DNA of 18,516 nucleotides from Syncephalis fuscata S228 (lineage: Eukaryota; Fungi; Zoopagomycota), in assembly GCA_025786725.1 (NCBI GenBank). It is one part of the record JAHLTZ010000185.1 of this genome. One strand, given 5' to 3'. The translations under genes were made by a program, and so were the position numbers. A model generated the notes under the pieces. It was given only the letters and a program-made list of their open reading frames with translations, was not told the DNA's origin and made no database searches. Shown here piece by piece: positions 2,578 through 18,342 of this stretch. Position 1 is the stretch's first letter. Every line of letters begins with the position of its first letter.

Positions 2578-2585
2578 TATAAATA
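2578..2585 (+). promoter_or_regulatory. Putative TATA box of the micro-exon gene
   Basis: TATAAATA lies 145 nt upstream of the ATG at 2723. It is followed by a C/A/T-rich, ATG-free leader and the start context tcaccATG. Confidence 0.55.
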
Positions 2586-2722: not shown

Positions 2723-5700
2723 ATGAAGCTTTCTATTGCCGTCGTTTGCACCATTGTCGTTGCGCTTGTGGCCGTTACAACCATGGTGGATGCTAAACCA
2801 GCCTTAGTTCGTCGTGGTGGTATGTTGCAATAACATAAATATTCCATAGTTTTATATTTACTAACGGTATTTCTAAATAATAATTACAATAGATCGTAAG
2901 TTATATTGTATATTAGCTAATTACTTACTGATTATATACCATGTACTGTTTGCATCAACAACTAAATATCAATAGCTGGTAGGTTGCGTTACATATTAAT
3001 AGAACATATACTAATTATGTGCTATATACTGTATCTATCAACAACTTAATATTAGCTCAATGTAAGTTGTATTGTATATTAATTTATTACTCACTAATTG
3101 CATGTTATGCGCCATGTGTACCAACAACGTAATACTAATAGGCGGTAAGTAATATTGTATATTGATGGCTTATAAATTAATTATATACCATGTATTGTGT
3201 ATATCAACAATTTAATATTAATAGCTGGTAAGTCGTACTGTATATTATTTTATTTTATTTTGAAGAGCTTGTGAGCCCCCGCTGCGCATAATTAAAGAAT
3301 TTGCGCTGCTTCCCACTATATTTGGACTTTTCCAAACTTTTAACGGGTGGACTGCCACGTTTTTGCGCAAAATCCGGTCCATATAGATTTTACACGGGGG
3401 CCATCTTCCTTTAAATGGTGCTACACAGCACTATTCTCTTGAAGTTGGTCCCAATTGGGTTTTCCTCGGCTATTCTGGCCAAGGTCTTGTTTCCGGACCT
3501 ACTTATTGGGTTCTGGTTTGCAATTTGTTAACTAGAGAAAACTGGGGGGGGGATTTTCCACTTAAGGATTGGTTCAAACTGAGGTTTGAACCCGGAGCCT
3601 TCAGCTCGGGAGACGCTGCCTTACCAACTGGGCTAGCAACGTCCCCTGTCGTACTGTATATTAACTTACTATGCGCTAATTGTATACCATGCACCGTGTA
3701 TATCAATAACAATATTAATAGCATGTAAGTTGTATTGTATATTAGTTGAGCATTATTTAACTGTATATTGTGTATTATATGTATCAATAACTTGATAATA
3801 ATAGGCGGTAAGTAGCAATATATATTGCTGACTTATAAATTAATTGTGTGTCATGCACTGTGCGTATCAATAATTTGATGGAATAGTTGGCAAGTAACAT
3901 ACATATTCACTGATTATACACTAATTATATCCATGTATTGCGTGTTTCAATAACTTAATATTAATAGAAAGTAAGTTGTATCGTATATTAGCTAATTACT
4001 TACTAATTATATCCATGTATTGCGTGCATCAACAAATATTAATAGACTGTAAGTAGCATTGTATATTGGTTAACTATGCATTAACTATGCTATTTACTGA
4101 TTGTATCGATTATTTAATATTAATAGGCAGTAAGTGGTATTTTATATTAACTGCCTATATATTAACTGCTATTTATTGATTGTACCAATTGTTTAATATT
4201 AATAGAGAGTAAGCAATATTGTATATTAACTGACTATGTATTAACTGCTATTTACTAATTGTACCAATTGTTTAATATTAATAGGAAGTAAGTTGTACTG
4301 TGTATTAACTGACTATATATTAACTTCTATTTACTAATTGTACCGAATATTTAATATTAATAGGAAGTAAGTTGTACCATGTATTAACTGACTATATATT
4401 AACTGCTATTTACTAATTGTACCAATTATTTAATATCAATAGCTGGTAAGTAGTATTATATAACAATGAACTATAAATTAATCACATTTTATTGATTGAT
4501 TGACCGATTATTCGATACTAATAGGCTGTAAGTAGTATTATATATTAATTAACCATGCATTAACTAAGCTATTTATTGATAATTTAATTATTTAATATTA
4601 ATAGTGGGTAAGTATTATTGTATTTTAATTAACTATACATTAACTATACTAATTACTAATAATATTAACTATTTAATATTAATAGATTGTAAGTGATATT
4701 ATATATTAATTGATTATTTACCAATCGTATATGCTGTACTATGTGTGTCAACAACTCAATATAATAGGGGGTAAGTGATATTGTATATTAATTATGTTAT
4801 TTACTAATTGTACTGATTATTTGATACTAATAGGCAGTAAGTGGTATTATATATTAACTAACTATACATTAACTATGTTATTTACTGATTACACCAATTA
4901 TTTAATATTAATAGAATGTAAGTGATATTGTATATTAACTGACTATACATTAACTCTGATATTAACTGATTATACCGATTATTTATATTAATAGGTCGTA
5001 AGTGGTATTGTGTATTAATTAACTATAGATTAACTGATATTTACTGGTTGTACCAAATATTTAATATTAATAGGAAGTAAGTTATATTGCGTACTAGCTA
5101 ACTATATATTAACTGCTATTTACTACTTGTACCAATTATTTAATATCAATAGATGGTAAGTGGTATTGTGTAGTAACTAACTATACATTAACTATTATAT
5201 TTACTAATTGTGCCAACTATTTAATATTAATAGGCAGTAAGTAGCACTGTATATTGACTAATTACTCACTAATCACATGCTATTTACTGATTGTACCAAT
5301 TATTTAATATTAATAGGCTGTAAGTAGTATTGTATATTAACTGCCTATATATTAACTGCTATTTATTGACTGTATCGATTATTTAATATCAATAGGCAGT
5401 AAGTGGTATTGTGTAGTAACTAACTATACATTAACTATTATATTTACTGATTGTGCCAATTATTTAATATTAATAGGAAGTAAGTTGTACTGTGTATTAA
5501 CTGATTATATATTAACTTCTATTTACTGATTGTATCAATTGTTTAATATTAATAGCAAGTAAGTTGTACCATGTATTAACTGACTATATATTAACTGCTA
5601 TTTACTGATTGTACCAATTGTTTAATATTAATAGTTTGTAAGTAATATTCTATATTAATTGACTATAAACTAATTACATGTTATTCACTATATATATATA

Positions 5701-5803
5701 TATCAACAATTTAATAATAATAGGCGGTAAGTAACATTATATATTGACTGACTATGCATTAATTATATGGCATATAATATCTTTATTCGTAAATACAGCA
5801 TAA
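2723..5803 (+). CDS. Secreted 6-Cys prepropeptide (65 aa) encoded by 33 exons, 31 of them micro-exons
   Basis: Exon 1 is 2723-2819 (MKLSIAVVCTIVVALVAVTTMVDAKPALVRRG + G). Micro-exons (start:sequence): 2893 ATC, 2976 CTG, 3056 CTCAAT, 3142 GCG, 3225 CTG, 3722 CAT, 3805 GCG, 3887 TTG, 3968 AAA, 4046 ACT, 4127 GCA, 4206 AGA, 4285 GAA, 4364 GAA, 4443 CTG, 4525 GCT, 4605 TGG, 4686 ATT, 4768 GGG, 4834 GCA, 4915 AAT, 4995 GTC, 5074 GAA, 5153 ATG, 5234 GCA, 5317 GCT, 5396 GCA, 5477 GAA, 5556 CAA, 5635 TTT, 5724 GCG. The last exon is 5799 CA-TAA. Each micro-exon is flanked by TAG and GTAAG (GTAGG once, GCAAG once). The joined CDS is 198 nt with no internal stop: ...RRGDPAQCAACVENCKRRTGLDWGKCRNGSCRTICA*. 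Confidence 0.9.
2896..5726 (+). repeat. Tandem array of ~79-83 bp intron + micro-exon units
   Basis: The unit consensus is GTAAGT-nntattgtatattaactgactata...(tactRat)...ttTAATATTAATAG-NNN. Introns are mostly 75-80 nt (range 63-86; intron 6 is 494 nt with the SINE and 78 nt without it). Confidence 0.95.
3248..3647 (-). mobile_element. tRNA-derived SINE (400 bp) inserted antisense in intron 6
   Basis: A perfect 16-bp TSD, gtcgtactgtatatta, lies at 3232-3247 and 3648-3663. The minus-strand 5' head AGGGGACGTTGC-TAGCCCAGTTGG (A box, 3635-3624) leads to GGTTCAAACC (B box, 3592-3583). The 3' tail is ...CTTC-AAAATAAAATAAAA. The insert is GC-richer than its flanks, and removing it plus one TSD restores a 78-nt array-type intron. 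Confidence 0.9.
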
Positions 5804-6034
5804 TCGATGGTTTCAAGACATCAGCATTGGTGGTGCAATCAAGCCACTATTCCAATACACTTTAGGTATATATTCGGTAAAAAGCAAGACCATTTGACAA
5901 CTACGCCGTCCGGTCTATTTATATATCAAGTTTTGGCCAATGCTCCGATTCATTTAGTCTTTAATCAATGAGATCATTATTTTATCAACAAGCTTGCATC
6001 TAGTTGTTTCTATTCAACTGTGCAAGCTTATAGT

Positions 6035-6040
6035 AATAAA
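6035..6040 (+). promoter_or_regulatory. Candidate polyadenylation signal of the micro-exon gene
   Basis: First AATAAA downstream of the stop at 5803. This is weak evidence in AT-rich DNA. Confidence 0.3.
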
Positions 6041-7511
6041 CCTATGGTTCCATCTTAATTATATACAATCAAATTGCTATATCTATAATCACGTTCTATT
6101 TACATTCAATAATTGACAACTATTAATCAAATAGTTAAATTAACAAAATGTATATGATCATATCACCTAAGCTATAGGCATAGATTGATATGAATAGTAG
6201 CAAAGCTATCATTATCATATAGCCAAATAATATTATGCTGAAATTAAAATAAAGACGTTTTTTTAATAGAACATGGCAATAAAGCATAGGATATTATAAT
6301 ATAAAATAAATAAGCGAATTAGATACGTGAATAGTGATAGTGAAACTATACTGTATGCAATTGGCCAAGAGTAATGAACTAAATGAATCAAAATACACTA
6401 AAAGAATACAGTTAGCAATGAGCTTTTAGCCTTTGTTAGTATAATTTTTACAATTTACAATATTAATGGTATAGATGGTCATATAGTACAAATATACAGG
6501 ATAGCTATGCACAGTACAATAATAATGATAAATAAATAGCTTAATAACCAATGACACTCAACAGCCAGTTTTATCTTCAATAAAGCGAATATTTCGTTTA
6601 AATGTGTGGCTATTATAGCTATTTAACTGCCAAGTCACATTAAACAACCAATAGTGTGCTTAATATTATCAAAAAAGTTATCTTTATTTAGTTAATAAAA
6701 ATATTATAAGATTTAATACAAGTCAAGTGGATTAAATGATCCGTCACAGCACCCTTTTAAGCTTCTTTTGCCATGTTCCACAACTTTTTTAAATTGGAAC
6801 ATTGGAGCGACTACTGCGACATTTAAAAGTAGATGTTACGAGTAGATTGTTATAGTTTATCAATGACAAATGCCATGTTGACGGTTTTATTTTGCATATC
6901 TTTACTCTTGCTTGATAACCAACTAATTAGCTTGAGTTGATCAAAGCAATAATACTTTTATGCAACTCGAAATTGTTTAATTGCTAAATCTGATATCTGA
7001 AATGCTCTAAATAAGCCAATCTAATCTTATTTGTTGGTTAAATTTTTTGCTTGCATTAAAATTTATTTATTTATTTTAATGTTTGTTTCATTAGTTGTTT
7101 GTTTTTATTTTTCAATAAAGACATTTATTTTAACATTAACTACTATTCCAACATTATTATTCTAATTTTTACAGAGCATGTTGTTTATTGTATTTTTTGA
7201 GTTGCATTTGCTACAATTAACTAAACTATGTAAATAAACAAAGTTTTAAATTAAAATTCGTTGCATTTATTGTAATTAGCTTTTTCAAAATTTCTCTATT
7301 TTACTTTGACGCTCATATTTTGAGCCCTTAAAGCAAAACTCATTCCAATTGAAGTCGCACTGCTATACATAACAATTATATTGTTTTTTATTAAAATATT
7401 GTTAATAAATTGATTTAAATAAGCAATACAATATAGTATTTGATTTTACTGAATATTTGAGGCCGATTATTATTGTTGTTGGCTATGTGTAGAAAAATTG
7501 ATTGGATATTA

Positions 7512-8058
7512 ATAAAAGTCATATAATTGATTTTATATCGTTTCATAGTTGTTATTGTTGTTACTATGTACAGTGTGGTTTATTGCGTTTAAATGGTTTC
7601 TTCTATTTTCCAAGCTTCTACTGTCGCATTTGGGGAAATTTGCAATGTGAGATACTCGTCTATGGTGACAAAAAGGTAAAAAGACTAGCGTTTCTAATGT
7701 TCGCTACTCTCTTGAACATCCTTGGTATCAACTTGATAGACACAGATTATTTGCCAATCATTGATGAAGCAAATCGACCTCCACCATATGCAATAATGAT
7801 AGGTTGAGTGTTTTCACTAGAAAGATATTGTGGTGACAGTTGTAACCAGAATATACGGCATGCCGTTGAGGTTACTTGAACAGATGTTGATGTAAATAAG
7901 AGAAATAAAGACTAGGGATTGAATCATGTTTTTTATTGCTGTTCAAATACACATGTTATTTATATTGTTATATTCAGCATTATCACATAATATATTACTG
8001 AACAAAAAGATAAGATAACAATAGAAAAAGAAAGTGAAATGAATAAATAAAAATGTGG
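7512..8058. repeat. Direct repeat copy B
   Basis: Aligns to 352-872. It carries an extra 27 nt at 7931-7957 that duplicates the flanking catgtt. Confidence 0.95.
7564..7905 (-). pseudogene. Decayed TnpB/Fanzor-like RuvC nuclease fragment (copy B)
   Basis: Minus strand reads ...YLSSENTQPIIIAYGGGRFASSMIGK*SVSIKLIPRMFKRVANIRNASLFTF/VTIDEYLTLQI/PKCDSRSLENRRNH. DEYLT is at 7660-7646 and PKC at 7634-7626. The stop and frameshifts are shared with copy A. Confidence 0.55.
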
Positions 8059-8723: not shown

Positions 8724-10470
<1,747 letters not shown>

Positions 10471-10726: not shown

Positions 10727-12208
10727 CTATCCACAATTATATTGATGATAATCAGGTAATGATTGTATTAGTGTACGTTTACCGTCGTCCATCAAGGTAA
10801 CAAGTGCACTGCGCACTTTAAGTAGACACGGCAATCGACAGAATCGTAATTGCCAAGGCGCATAGGCTGTACGGAACTTTTGCCATATCATAATACTAAG
10901 TGTATCGTGATAGAGACACGTACCACAGTGCCAACAAGTATCGCCTGTTGCATCAAGTAATGATGTAGTACCATCCAATCTACTCGATTGACGTAATCCA
11001 ATAGGCAAATGATGTGGCATTGTTGTAGTTGCTGAGTGGTTATTCTGTTGACCCACTAGTTGTATACACTGTGAATAGAGACCGTAATTATGTGCATAGA
11101 CTTGAAATGGTACTTGATATACACCACGCTTACTTCGTCTCTTTCTTAGTTGTGATGGCTGTACACCCTCAAACTTAACTGGTAATCCTGTCCACCATTC
11201 ATGACTAGGCAATGCATCATTGGTATCGATATCAATAGATGTATCGATATCATTTATAGTGGTGGCACTATGTGAAATGGTCAATGAATTCGGATCTACT
11301 ATCGTGTGAAATTGTCGTAACCAAAAGGGACATGGTCGATCAATCATCGGCATACTAGATGTTTTAGATTCTCTTGAATGTTCATCATCCAATCGAATGG
11401 TTGGTGCAATCATTAATGGATTATCTTTAAACCAAAAGCATACTAGCAATGCTTGTTGACATAATTCAGCCGGTAATGACTTTAGTCGATTACCGGAAAC
11501 ATCAAGTGAACACAAATCTTTGAGTTCAGCCAATTCTTGTGGCAAGTGTTCCAAGCAATTATTATAAAGATTAAGATTATTAAGTCGTTTCAACTGTGAA
11601 ATGCCTTTGGGCAGTGTACATAATTGATTGTTGGATAGATCCAACTCTTCCAATCCAGCTAATCCATAAATAGAGGTTGATAATTGAGTAATACAATTAT
11701 TACCAAGTCTTAGAATACGTAATTGTTGAAGTTGAGGCAATGCCAGTGTCAAAACACGCTAAATAATAACCATTAATATTTATACAAATATATACATATG
11801 GATATTACTTACAAAATTGGTAATATGTTGCCGTGTTAATTGAATCATATTTGTGGCCGTAAATGGTACTTGAATAGTTTCAACCGGTGTAGTTAACTTT
11901 GGTCTCGTTGATAGTCGTGATGACCTTGTTGACCGCTTCTCTTCTAATAGAGGCGGCGATGGCAGTTGCGTATATTGAGACGTCATATTGATTGGTATGT
12001 TTTGAGAAGTGATATGCTGTAACGGTTGATCGTTCTTATTATAGTCATTAGTCTGTCCCGTAGTAGCTGCCATTGCTATCGCTTCATCGTAGTCTGACGT
12101 ATCTTCATCAATTGGCTGCGATCTCTCCTCGCTATAATAACGAGACAGTGTATAGCCATCCTCGTTGTCTGCCCGCAAACTCCAAAGAATGATTTCATTA
12201 CACGTCAT
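10727..12208 (-). CDS. Leucine-rich repeat protein (~475 aa, 2 exons)
   Basis: Exon 1 is 12208-11813, followed by a 54-nt GTAAGT...TTAG intron (11812-11759), then exon 2 at 11758-10727 in frame. There are about four LxxLxLxxNxL repeats (LRILRLGNNCI, LEELDLSNNQL, LNNLNLYNNCL, LCSLDVSGNRL) and a C-terminal CxxC...CxxxC (CWHC...FCRLPC). Confidence 0.85.
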
Positions 12209-12533: not shown

Positions 12534-14749
12534 ATGTCGACCGACCGTACACTAGCTATTGTCGATAATGGGGCTTACAGTATTAAGGCCGGGGTGATGG
12601 GCCGCGATGAACAGCCACAGTAAGTGGAAAGAGTACAGGAAGGGGCGCAGTGTGACGTTTGCACAGTACAGTCGTGATTAATAGACCTTTATCAACGGTA
12701 TAGCGTAATGCCTAACTGCTTGGCTAAAGTAAAAGGGGCACGGCAATGGCTTGTAGCGGATGAGTTGAATTCTACGCATAATTATGCTGGTCTTTACTAT
12801 CGATTGCCCTTTGAAAAGGTAATACTAATAGTGAAGTAGCTAATAAATAGTAATCAACATAGAACTAATGTTAACTAGGGTATTCTAGTTGATTGGGATG
12901 TTGAACGTACTGTTTGGGAACGACTATTTTCATCAAATCTATTAAATGTAAGTTAAAAAGAGATATGTAAATACAAATGGTTAATCAATTATATTATAGT
13001 GTAATCTTGATACAACGTGGTTATGGTTGACTGAACCTTGTTTAAATCTACCCAATGTACAAGAAACATATGATCAAGTATTATTTGAAGAGTTTGGACT
13101 GGATGGATACGCACGCCACACAGGTAATTAGATGAATATGTATATATATGTGTGTGTAGTTATTAATATAATCAATTGTATAGCACCGGAATGGTGTATT
13201 AGAAATGATTTAAGTAATTTATTTAACGATTCAATAGCACCTTCAGTCAATGAATTAAATACAGCCACCATATCAACTATGCCTGATACAAATATATACG
13301 ATAGAGACTGTGTACTTATTGTAGATGTTGGTTACTCGTTTACCCATGCTGTTCCATTTCTAAATGGACAAATGATTAGTAGTGCTATTAGAAGGTAAAT
13401 ATGGCTAATTAACAGCCATAATGTTGATCTTACTAATCTATTACAGATTAAATGTAGGAGGCAAATTCTTAACAAATCATTTAAAAGAGATGATTTCATT
13501 TAGGTAATTATTAGTAATATACGAGCTATCTAAAGTTGTATTTAATAATATTGATATTAGACAGTGGAATATGATGGATGAAACGTATTTAGTTAATCAA
13601 ATTAAAGAAACGTGCTGTTTTGTATCTTCAGATATCTATCGTGATCTTCGTATCTGTTAGTAAGTATTTGTATCATTTAAATATCCTTTACTAGATAGAT
13701 AGTTGTAATAATAATAACAATTATCATTATTATGTATAATTTAGAGATAATCCACGATCTAATGACATTTTACAAGCTTATATATTACCCGACTTTGTTG
13801 ATACACATCAAGGCTATGTCAAGGTAAGTAGTAGCAACTTTATAATAATTAATATTTATTGTAATAAAATTAGACACCCGAACAAGTGAGATCGGCACCA
13901 TTGGCCGAAGAACAAGTAAATTAAATCAAATCAGACCAATTCTTTGTATTCATAATTGTACTTATTGTTTCAGGTGTTATGGATGAATAATGAGCGATTC
14001 ACCGTGCCTGAGGTACTATTCCATCCCTCAGATATTGGTTAGTATGAATAGCTAAAGAGTATTATGGTAGAGGCAATACGATAATCTTTACCAAACATAG
14101 GTATGCCACAAGCCGGTTTGGCCGAATTAATCCTGCGTGCCGTCCAAGCCACTCCTGAAAGTAAATATAAACGATTTAATACGTACCCATGAAGACACTA
14201 TTTACCTAGATTATATATTATAGCATTACACGCTCTATTATATGCCAATATCATTATAGTGGGTGGCAGTGCCCAATATCAAGGCTTCTATGATCGATTG
14301 TAAGTAGAAATAGCGAATATAATAAATGTAATAAATGTGATATAATATCTGTAATAATTAGATATTCTGAATTGCGTTCAATTGTACCCTCTGAACACAA
14401 TCTCCGTATTGCCATGCCTCAAACGTAAGTTAATAACCACGTGTCATAATAAATGGCCTTTTGCATGGCCATTGCTTTAAATCAACGCTTTGTATCATCG
14501 TCCATAGACCACTGATCTAACCTACTACTATTATACTATTATGCCATCCTACTATCATTTATCTCTCTTATCTCTTTTGTTACACGTTAAAGGCCGGAAC
14601 AATATGCTTGGCAAGGTGCTTATCACCACATCCATCAACATGCATTGTCGCAGCTAAAAGAAGACATAGTAACGCGTGCTGAGTATCAAGAAGAGGGCTC
14701 ATCTGCACATCATCGTCGTCGTCGTCATCACCGTCGTCGTCGTCATTAA
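12534..14749 (+). CDS. ARP6: Actin-related protein 6 (SWR1 complex), 14 exons
   Basis: Spliced translation: MSTDRTLAIVDNGAYSIKAG...GLYYRLPFEKGILVDWDVERTVW...LTEPCLNLPNVQETYDQVLFEEFG...IVDVGYSFTHAVPF...[42 protein letters not shown]...YILPDF...NNERFTVPEVLFHPSDIGMPQAG...AWQGA...VTRAEYQEEG. Stop TAA at 14747-14749. The exon 7/8 junction (~13655/13745) is ambiguous. Confidence 0.93.
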
Positions 14750-15389: not shown

Positions 15390-17060
15390 TTGACATATTT
15401 CCACTTGGTTTGTTCGTTTGTGCGTTGTTCGTTTTAGCGCGTACTCCTCCAGTTTGCGACGTCTCTCTGTTGTAGTAACAACAACAACAGCAGCAATAAC
15501 ACGCCATACTAGCGTTTAGTACGCTCTAAAGCTTTCTCTCACTTTCACTTTCACTTTTTTGTTTAACTTGTGCGTTTTCGGTCACGCTCGCTCTTCATTA
15601 TCATCTGAAGCAATTATACCGTTTGGTGTTTGCCACTTGTTTGTTTGTTTGTTTGTCTGTTTGCTCAATCGTTTATTTGTTTGTCTGTTTGTGTCCGCGT
15701 CCATTGACTCGGTCATAGCCTTGCCTTTACAGCTATTTGGATTGTCGTGTGATTGTTTGGTATAATAGTGTGCGTGTGTACCCTTATTATACTAGTATTA
15801 CAACTTTGGTACACGCCAACTATTAATCCGATCTGCCTCCATTAGCACATCATTGCCATACTCTGCACGCATATACGCAGACACACGTCTCGATTATCAC
15901 GCGCTCATCTGTTTTTTTCATTTCACGCTGTGAACTTGACTAAACACACACACACGCCCATCCACGCACACACTTACACACACATATATATATAACAACT
16001 GTGGCCGCTCATCTATCAATAACGGCACAACGATCCACACCTTTTCGGTTACTTTTGAAAAACGTATACTTTGATCTTACTGATTACTGTATTGTGCTAG
16101 CACAGATCTCTGTTCATCAAACGCAACACTAAAAAATCACTATTATTACTGCTACTGCTACTACTATTAACACTCCTACTATACTAGTACTACTATTCCT
16201 ACATTTGCAACAACAACAACAACAACAACAACTATACTGACATTTGCGTGCACTTGCTTCTATTTGGCCTAAATTATAACTATTGCCGTTATTTAGTGCT
16301 ATCCATTTATATAACACTACAGATTCGTCCACTTACAAGCAAGACTGCAAGTTTGGAATTGCACCTTCACTCGTTTCAACTTGTGTGTAGGTAAGCACGA
16401 GTAACTTGTTAATTACATTTCAAACATTGTCTAACTATTAATGTGCATTTATTACACTCGACGTGGATTTATTTCATATTATAATTATTATTGATTGCAT
16501 TTGTGCTTTAATATTATTATCCATTCTTTATCGACGTGTGTAGCTTGCCTTTCGTGCAGTTTTTTGTTGCTGTCATTACTGCTATTGTCGTTTATTCTCG
16601 TGTGCTTTTTCGTTGGGCAGCAAATACTATTGCTCAGTATTATTTTTAAAGGTATGTGCATTAATACTACTATTTAACGGTCTAGCTATATTAATAAGTC
16701 AATAGAGTAACTTGTGATACGAATTTGAACGTCTCCCTCCTTCCTGCCATAATCCCGCTGTTATTAGTATTTGAATAACATTGCCATTTTGTGGTATTAA
16801 GCTTTTGTGCTTTCTTTCTCGCATTCTTTCTTTTGCTAGACCTTGTTTCCACGCATATTACACCACGCATACTCGCGCACTTTCCAACTGATTTATTTAC
16901 TACTACAAACCAACCATTTAAACGCCACCTTACTACTTGTCGCGCTCCGATTGCAACGCATTTGACCGGCCAATCTATTAACTTGGTTCGATCGACCTTT
17001 GAATTTTTTCTGCACTTATACTTGTCTTTGCGCTAGTCGCTTATTTGTTTTTATTTTAAC

Positions 17061-18231
17061 ATGATGCCCTACCGCCCACCACAACGCCAACAATCCCCTG
17101 CTCGTCAGCGTACTCCTCCGCTTCGTCAGCCATCGCCAACGCATCAGCGTAACTCGAGCTATAGCCAGGCCACGAATAACTCGGATCCATACGGCTCACC
17201 ATCCAATAGCCGAAACCAAAACCAGGCTGGTCCAACGATGGTACCAGGCCATCCAGGTGGGCCAATTAACACAGGTAGCGGTGGTATTAAACAAATACCG
17301 CTTACCTGTTCTGGCCACACACGTCCGTTGTTCAGCTACAGTTTTCGCCAGTACTTGAAGATGGCAGCTATTTATTAATTAGCGCCTGTAAAGACGGCAA
17401 TCCTATGCTGCGTATTGGTGCAACCGGCGATTGGATCGGAACATTCAAGGGCCATAAAGGTGCTGTGTGGTGTGCACGTCTTAATATGGATGCTTCACGT
17501 GCTGTTACCGCTTCAGCTGATTTCTCTGCTAAAGTATGGGATACATTCAGCGGTGAAGTACTGCATACATTCCAACACAAGCATATAGTCCGTGCCGTCG
17601 ACATTTCACCTGATGGCCGCTACGTTGTCAGCGGCGGTCACGAGAAAGTCGTGCGTATGTACGATCTATCATCGCCTGATGCTGCACCTCGTTTGGCTAT
17701 GGGCCACGAAGCAACCATTAAAGGCATTGTTTGGGATCAATGGCATGGCGTGTTGATCACGCATGCCGAAGAACGTAGCGTTCGTATTTGGGATTTACGT
17801 ACGCTGAAGCAGACCAACTTGCTTGAAACGCAAGAGCGCGTCACCTCGGTCGAATTATCGAGCGATGGTGCAGTCATTAGCGCTACAGCCGGCAAGGCGG
17901 TCTATTTCTGGGATGCAGATACCTACGAATTGGTCAAAACGATCAATATGACCTTCGAGGCTAGCTGTGTTACTCTACATCCTACACGGGCCAGATTTGT
18001 TGTTGGTTCCAGCTCGGATCTATGGGTCGTGTCTACGATTTGGCATCTGGCCAAGAGCTAGAATTGTACAAAGGCCATCACGGACCAGTGCACACCGTCA
18101 GCTACAGTCCCGATGGTGAGGTGTATGCAACGGGTTCGGAAGATGGTACAATTCGTTTGTGGCAAACCATTCCTGGTACCGAGTATGGTCTATGGCAAGC
18201 TCAGTACACGGACGAAGAAGCTGCGCGCTAG
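17061..18231 (+). CDS. STRAP: STRAP/UNRIP-like WD40 protein; CDS broken by 1-nt frameshifts, 3' end uncertain
   Basis: A Pro/Gln/Ser-rich N-terminus leads to IPLTCSGHTRP/[shift ~17325]VVQLQFSPVLEDGSYLLISACKDGNPMLRIGATGDWIGTFKGHKGAVW...ASADFSAKVWD...DLW/[shift ~18026]VRVYD...KGHHGPVHTVSYSPDGEVYATGSEDGTIRLWQ...YGLW, which are characteristic STRAP motifs. No introns were seen in the CDS. It may continue into the poly-Q frame that runs off the window end. Confidence 0.85.
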
Positions 18232-18342
18232 CTGCATTGGCTGCCGATGAAGAAGCTTGTTGGCTGCGCTATTGCCGCCGATTAATGGGCGCACAACATC
18301 ACCGCCACAGCAACATCAGCTTTGTCACAAGGCTATAGTCCA

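Follow-up and report, generated by a model that had tools for sequence, protein, structure and literature searches.

A probable gene of 31 consecutive micro-exons and its secreted-peptide family in the mycoparasitic fungus Syncephalis fuscata

Genes whose coding sequence is divided among very small exons are known from several unrelated lineages. The closest precedent lies in the nank (NACHT-ankyrin) NLR genes of Tuber melanosporum, which, according to the papers that cite Iotti et al. 2012 (PMC4986451, PMC13449251, PMC10197012), contain tens of codon-sized exons and encode large intracellular receptors diversified by alternative splicing. The micro-exon genes (MEGs) of Schistosoma have exons of 6-36 nt that make up about 80% of the coding region (PMC5825161), and the bicycle genes of aphids, which average about 17 exons, encode cysteine-patterned secreted effector candidates (bioRxiv 10.1101/2021.09.24.461719). 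The initial annotation of the locus discussed below held that no gene with about 30 consecutive codon-sized exons had been described, a claim that has to be given up, since the Tuber genes precede it as those citing papers describe them.

The locus lies at positions 2723-5803 of an 18,516-nucleotide stretch of the Syncephalis fuscata S228 record JAHLTZ010000185.1, and this whole stretch is called the window throughout. S. fuscata is a haustorial parasite of Mucorales. In all likelihood the locus is a real spliced gene belonging to a lineage-specific family of small, predicted secreted peptides. Its parts are as follows.

2578-2585, plus strand: TATA-like box of the family promoter, within a region (2570-2610) conserved in the array genes and in the intronless paralogue P0003
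2616-2722, plus strand: putative 5' UTR; homology with the intronless paralogues P0007 and P0010 begins at 2616-2618
2723-2819, plus strand: exon 1, 97 nt, encoding a predicted signal peptide (residues 1-24), a predicted pro-peptide (residues 25-31, ending in a dibasic RR Kex2-type site), Gly32 and the first base of codon 33
2893-3227, plus strand: micro-exons 2-6, starting at 2893, 2976, 3056 (6 nt, 3056-3061), 3142 and 3225, with introns of 77-80 nt among them
3228-3721, plus strand: intron 6, 494 nt long, made up of an ordinary unit intron and an insertion
3248-3647, minus strand: SINE-like insertion of about 400 bp within intron 6, with a tRNA-like head and an A-rich tail
3722-5726, plus strand: micro-exons 7-32, 3 nt each, with introns of 63-86 nt; numbers 7-19 start at 3722, 3805, 3887, 3968, 4046, 4127, 4206, 4285, 4364, 4443, 4525, 4605 and 4686, and numbers 20-32 at 4768, 4834, 4915, 4995, 5074, 5153, 5234, 5317, 5396, 5477, 5556, 5635 and 5724
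5799-5803, plus strand: coding portion of the last exon: the remaining two bases of the final codon, then the stop
5804-6056, plus strand: 3' UTR, with a polyadenylation signal at 6035-6040

Between 2893 and 5726 there are exactly 31 acceptor-micro-exon-donor units, 30 with an exon of 3 nt and one with an exon of 6 nt, and the gene has 32 introns, all in phase 1, a recount that agrees in every figure with the initial annotation. The 198-nt coding sequence specifies 65 amino acids with no internal stop and with six cysteines spaced 2-3-10-4-3, and a single Gln codon is the only unsplit one in the micro-exon part, again as first described. The unit spacing of about 80 bp proposed there holds for 31 introns (63-86 nt) and fails for intron 6, which the insertion has brought to 494 nt. 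In the array the 3-nt pattern is found 30 times, whereas 2000 shuffles gave a mean of 0.13 and at most 2; the remainder of the window has three scattered matches, counting both strands. The division of exon 1 into signal peptide and pro-peptide was judged by eye from the pattern, the former from a conserved hydrophobic N-terminus in the sequence. Transcription would start near 2616.

The insertion in intron 6 is antisense to the gene and flanked by a 16-bp target-site duplication (3232-3247 and 3648-3663). A tRNA origin of its head was judged from A- and B-box-like motifs only, and ARAGORN and Rfam gave no match to the head. A copy 98% identical to it sits in intron 8 of the paralogous array gene L006, and other copies lie in introns 2, 8 and 23 of L001, intron 15 of L003 and intron 9 of L005, so that, across some 210 kb of S. 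fuscata-type DNA, all seven copies are found in introns of micro-exon arrays. They are antisense and begin some 15-20 nt past the donor, the youngest with target-site duplications of 15-16 bp, and the element could be a retroelement that inserts site-specifically into the intron repeat.

A search with exon 1 matched S. fuscata proteins only, and the exon is 74-91% identical across 12 of them. Six further array genes stand behind the same first exon (L001, L003, L004, L005, L006 and L010), the 3' end of an eighth is visible in L132, ending near 15945 on the minus strand, and the minus strand of L008 at about 2960-3985 holds a decayed copy that has lost its start codon and in which many splice sites are eroded, a natural negative control. 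The seven modelled genes together contain 216 introns with a median of 78 nt; of their 210 internal exons, 200 are of 3 nt. The exons of the paralogues were picked partly by eye, and the end of L010 and one degenerate unit of L006 are uncertain. A canonical branch motif falls within the last 65 nt of only 78% of 208 short introns, and some donors are weak. The 6-nt exon recurs at the equivalent place in L001, L004 and L005, and the 5-nt ending of the last exon is common to the window gene, L001, L003, L004, L005 and L006 and to the intronless P0003, P0013 and P0007.

The products of these arrays are 52-72 residues long; four have six cysteines, one has four, and two (L003 and L006) have none and include a second dibasic site. 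The phase-1 frame is open in six of the seven genes, the exception being L001, where one exon has 2 nt (and was read with X) and a stop comes a little ahead of the usual end; this gene is broken or mis-assembled. Elsewhere in the window a WD40 gene at 17061-18290 has apparent frameshifts near 17340-17400 and 18030, perhaps assembly indels, so the 2-nt exon of L001 is possibly a sequencing error too.

Similarity among family members extends beyond the coding sequence. The promoter region (2570-2610) is 66-93% identical in the array genes and P0003, and the 3' flank of the window gene is 83-91% identical to the nearest paralogous loci. A dispersed repeat of about 550 bp flanks the window gene at 340-900 and 7500-8040 and is found also near the array genes of L004 and L132, and a duplicated unit of about 240 bp, a possible regulatory repeat, lies upstream of the window gene (1950-2450) and upstream of L001 and L004. 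Downstream of the gene are a NAD-isocitrate dehydrogenase (IDH) subunit (8724-10470), an LRR protein (10727-12208) and an ARP6-like, actin-related gene (12534-14670). The order IDH, LRR, ARP6-like, WD40 is syntenic with S. plumigaleata, mostly at 65-78% DNA identity in long matches, and in the 5 kb that follow IDH at the syntenic locus neither an array nor a homologue is present. A profile search with three intronless paralogues likewise matched S. fuscata alone; neither this search nor that with exon 1 found a homologue outside the species.

Six intronless members of the family, P0003, P0007, P0008, P0010, P0011 and P0013, provide a test of how the arrays are to be read. An open frame is not enough to settle the matter, because the in-register frame of the window gene, in which each exon is one codon, is stop-free as well; random orders of the window exons are stop-free in 10% of shuffles, and stop-free with six cysteines in 0.2%. 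The open in-register frame, the 10% figure and the fact that Tandem Repeats Finder calls the introns of the array as a 79-bp tandem repeat could be cited for a non-coding minisatellite with splice-like words in it by chance, or for an in-register reading of the gene. The comparison with the intronless genes speaks for phase 1 instead. Joined in that frame, the micro-exons of L004 score 105 against P0013 (21 when shuffled), those of L010 score 70 against P0008 (21) and those of the window gene 44 against P0003 (18), with p=0.0005 in each case over 2000 order-shuffles, while the other two frames score 13-24. At the DNA level the match of the window gene to P0003 is modest (p=0.007). Cysteine spacing is identical in L004 and P0013 (2-3-13-3-3) and in L010 and P0008 (1-6-2).

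The in-register frame is moreover interrupted by stops in L004, L006 and L010, and the donor of exon 1 is in phase 1 in all seven modelled genes. Only the phase-1 frame fits the intronless paralogues, which settles the reading and largely rules out the in-register one. A passive minisatellite is rejected on other grounds: in units whose flanking introns differ at 7% of sites the triplets differ at 62% of sites, close to the value for unrelated units (72%), and such a decoupling of triplet from flank is not the behaviour of a neutral repeat. We regard either version of this alternative as scarcely credible. The intronless paralogues thereby support what had first been proposed, a real gene with a phase-1 reading and a genuine cysteine pattern.

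The intronless genes also bear on whether the arrays are spliced. Four of them (P0007, P0008, P0010 and P0013) share the 5' UTR from about window position 2616 and lack the TATA region, the promoter interval 2570-2610 being only 22-41% identical. At the other end their match to the 3' UTR runs on for about 15 nt after the polyadenylation signal, to near 6056; they continue with 5-6 A and then diverge to 36-44% identity, which would place the poly(A) site of the window gene near 6056. As evidence this 3' boundary counts for less than the 5' one, because some array genes also fall to 53% identity beyond it. With no introns, homology limited to the transcript and a short 3' A-tail, the four are probable retrocopies of fully spliced mRNA; the label stops short of certainty because no convincing target-site duplication was found around them, a lack that may reflect erosion. 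P0003 and P0011 are intronless and have kept the promoter, a combination that fits intron loss in place by cDNA recombination. Loss of all the introns of a gene by this route is a known mechanism in yeast.

An unrooted tree of UTRs and exon 1 scatters the intronless genes over at least three positions among the array genes, and a single intronless clade is rejected (AU p 8e-87). The simplest reading is that fully spliced mRNAs of the family have been reverse-transcribed repeatedly, and splicing of family members is accordingly a strong inference from these genomic traces. The reverse history, in which the intronless form is ancestral and arrays arose by intron insertion into existing peptide genes, could draw on P0003 and P0011, which have the promoter and no introns; with the intronless genes scattered as they are, it would demand several independent gains of homologous arrays, with an intron at every third base, and it leaves unaccounted for the four genes that have A-tails and no promoter. 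CDNA recombination accounts for P0003 without it, and, leaving aside the ultimate origin, on which an unrooted tree is silent, we think this order of events very improbable.

The probable retrocopies derive from relatives and not from the window gene, which is presumably expressed itself. It is conceivable that the family is real and the window copy silent or recently dead, for example through the SINE-like insertion in intron 6. Decayed members do exist, as the L008 copy and the 2-nt exon of L001 attest, and protein searches returned no annotated product encoded in the window. Against this stand a promoter, a start, a stop, 64 of 64 splice sites and six cysteines that are all intact, and an insertion that spares both ends of its intron and has counterparts in intact paralogues, all of which makes a dead copy improbable, if a little less so than ancestral intronless genes.

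It had first been proposed that gene predictors would miss such genes. Public annotation does miss or truncate them: five of the six public models at array loci span only the first 220-500 bp, and the truncated models for which a structure was rebuilt continue into an intron or into an incorrect exon. One public model, P0004, includes two consecutive 3-nt exons in the same phase.

Elsewhere in the genome, L132 holds the intronless P0011 (8001-8336, 111 aa), which keeps the promoter, adjoins two M36 fungalysin genes and has several KR sites between amphipathic-looking peptides. L007 carries a tandem pair of intronless paralogues (8752-8961 and 10001-10234) with an identical 3' flank and very different mature peptides, of 6 and 8 cysteines; P0013 has lost its dibasic site.

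How the arrays diversify is suggested by their introns. Within the window gene, introns 15 and 30 are 96% identical and introns 25 and 28 are 97% identical; introns 8 and 12 of L005, and 20 and 28 of L006, are 100% identical, all of them parts of duplicated blocks. The first intron of a gene, and the last, match the corresponding introns of paralogues. The repeated introns of about 78 nt could serve as recombination handles around each codon, so that, through unequal crossing-over and gene conversion, single codons or whole blocks would be gained, lost or exchanged without a change of frame. Selection, we infer, keeps or drives the differences between triplets, positive selection and conversion tracts confined to introns both fitting the data, and with triplets kept different the family would diversify very fast. 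From time to time its spliced mRNAs would be reverse-transcribed into intronless copies.

In fungi, short introns are recognised across the intron (intron definition). An exon of 3 nt would leave too little room for two spliceosomes at once, and neighbouring introns would then be removed in turn, the short introns being excised singly until a mature peptide of 34 residues had been built from 31 micro-exons behind the signal peptide and dibasic processing site supplied by exon 1. The precursor probably loses a signal of 24 residues and a pro-peptide of 7; the mature part of the window peptide carries an internal KRR, at which it could be cleaved further.

In the cysteine-rich members the main product probably includes every micro-exon, since leaving out a single one in the window gene would change the spacing of the cysteines in 29 of 31 cases and create a stop in three. 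A serious rival, one that we nevertheless hold to be unlikely overall, is that micro-exons are skipped at random, so that one gene yields a library of peptides, as reported for the Tuber nank genes and schistosome MEGs. The internal exons of intact members are multiples of three in a single phase, which makes any skip safe for the frame, and the three stops just mentioned are few; weak donors, and a tolerance of skips in the cysteine-free L003 and L006, point the same way. Apart from the changed cysteine spacing, what counts against the library is that the retrocopy-like genes retain the full spacing of their array relatives over at least 20 exons, so those mRNAs included every exon in the span. 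A splicing library is most plausible, above all, for the cysteine-free members.

With full inclusion, the cysteine-rich product would be a six-cysteine alpha-helical hairpin. In single-sequence models the mature parts of P0003 and P0013 are helical (pLDDT about 75), P0013 as a two-helix hairpin. Comparisons with databases and folds used exon 1 and the natural intronless paralogues in place of the joined window model: no Pfam family reaches its cut-off for the six paralogues, and PDB sequence and Foldseek searches gave nothing significant. Predicted secretion, a mostly cationic and cysteine-rich make-up, rapid change confined to the lineage and the parasitic lifestyle lead us to suggest, tentatively and at somewhat short of even odds, that the peptides are secreted where the fungus meets its host or other microbes and act as effectors or antimicrobials against mucoralean hosts or competitors.

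Arrays of codon-sized exons, known already, are probably common in fungi. A scan of metagenomes for the pattern returned at least 120 stretches, and at least 33 contigs have runs of 8-36 three-base exons with introns of fungal type; about 20 matches that were simple tetranucleotide-like repeats were set aside. On at least three contigs some 31 three-base exons lie directly behind a NACHT/NPHP3_N domain (L041 5565-8174, L062 5233-7523 and L122 4785-7151), the gene in L041 also having ankyrin, and by their predicted domains these are NLR genes of the Tuber nank kind in fungi. One of 663 metagenome triplets is an in-register stop, against 32 expected, suggesting that these exons are whole codons, unlike the split codons of S. 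fuscata. Apart from the three NACHT-linked arrays, runs of 8-36 such exons were seen in L044, L094, L098, L100, L028, L063, L117, L040, L128, L130, L060 and at least about 20 more, with introns of 65-100 nt, GC contents from 0.13 to 0.56 and exons apparently in register. The Alu motif was absent from the 33 array contigs, and no contig under study looked human. One further match, L026 15-3180, was rejected as micro-exons: it has 45 repeats with the same triplet in each, stands beside a Cas1 gene and is most likely a CRISPR array that fits the pattern by chance.

The locus offers an extreme natural test of the spliceosome, with 31 consecutive exons of 3-6 nt and genomic fossils indicating that full splicing works in the family. 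It also suggests, in a form open to test, how effector genes rich in introns and quick to evolve might come about, each codon being a unit that can recombine, and it supplies peptides that are candidates for host interaction in a mycoparasite on which little work has been done. The class to which these genes belong, shortened by annotation and hidden by repeat masking, numbers at least eight array loci in one genome and at least 33 metagenome contigs. A bolder proposal, to which we give slightly less credence than to the splicing library, is that frequent unit recombination and some skipping make the arrays a generator of diversity at codon resolution, from which a shifting library of secreted peptides would arise in this mycoparasite, and that the three-base-exon design arose independently in NLRs of many other fungi. 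Attackers and defenders in conflicts between fungi would then have arrived at a single hidden architecture, missed by annotation across the kingdom.

Comparison with the known systems places the window gene in none of the three with which this account began. Like the Schistosoma MEGs (PMC5825161), the family has short symmetric exons in series that can be skipped without loss of frame, and the fast evolution that defeats homology search, and its products, like theirs, are predicted to be secreted; the window exons, in contrast, are of 3 nt rather than 6-36 nt and make up 48% of the coding sequence (96 of 198 nt) rather than about 80%, encoding nearly all of the mature peptide, and no sequence relationship was seen. 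With the aphid bicycle genes it shares many small exons, nearly all in one phase. Those are insect genes with larger exons and a different phase convention, their CYC motif is absent in S. fuscata, and the searches, which gave S. fuscata proteins only, brought no sequence homology to them.

Two likenesses concern the peptide. A signal peptide followed by dibasic sites recalls the fungal KEX2-processed repeat proteins, or KEPs, and L003, L006 and P0011 carry a second or further KR site; unlike KEPs (PMC6339444, PMC7329392), the window product has one core peptide and no repeated cores. The P0013 model shows a likeness, short of significance, to plant alpha-hairpinins and vicilin-buried peptides, which have a helix-loop-helix, disulfides and CX3C motifs, and its Foldseek list is led by the leaders of Jug r 2 and Ana o 1 and by BWI-2c, at E 1.6 or worse. 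Plant alpha-hairpinins typically have four cysteines, and the S. fuscata peptide has six; the likeness, as far as a model allows, is probably convergent.

What appears to be new is a family of secreted peptides whose mature part is made wholly from codon-sized exons and for which there is retrocopy evidence; we found no description of such a family in the literature searched, nor, among the papers covered, one in which Syncephalis and microexon occur together. The nearest relation in design is still with the Tuber nank genes. Both are fungal, both have tens of 3-nt exons, and both, as far as the citing papers describe the Tuber genes, form an expanded family tied to interactions between organisms. 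Set against those same descriptions, the S. fuscata genes differ in several respects: they belong to Zoopagomycota, they have neither NACHT nor ankyrin (the window product being 65 aa), they encode a predicted secreted precursor of 52-72 aa, and the whole of the mature peptide lies in micro-exons, with signs of full inclusion.
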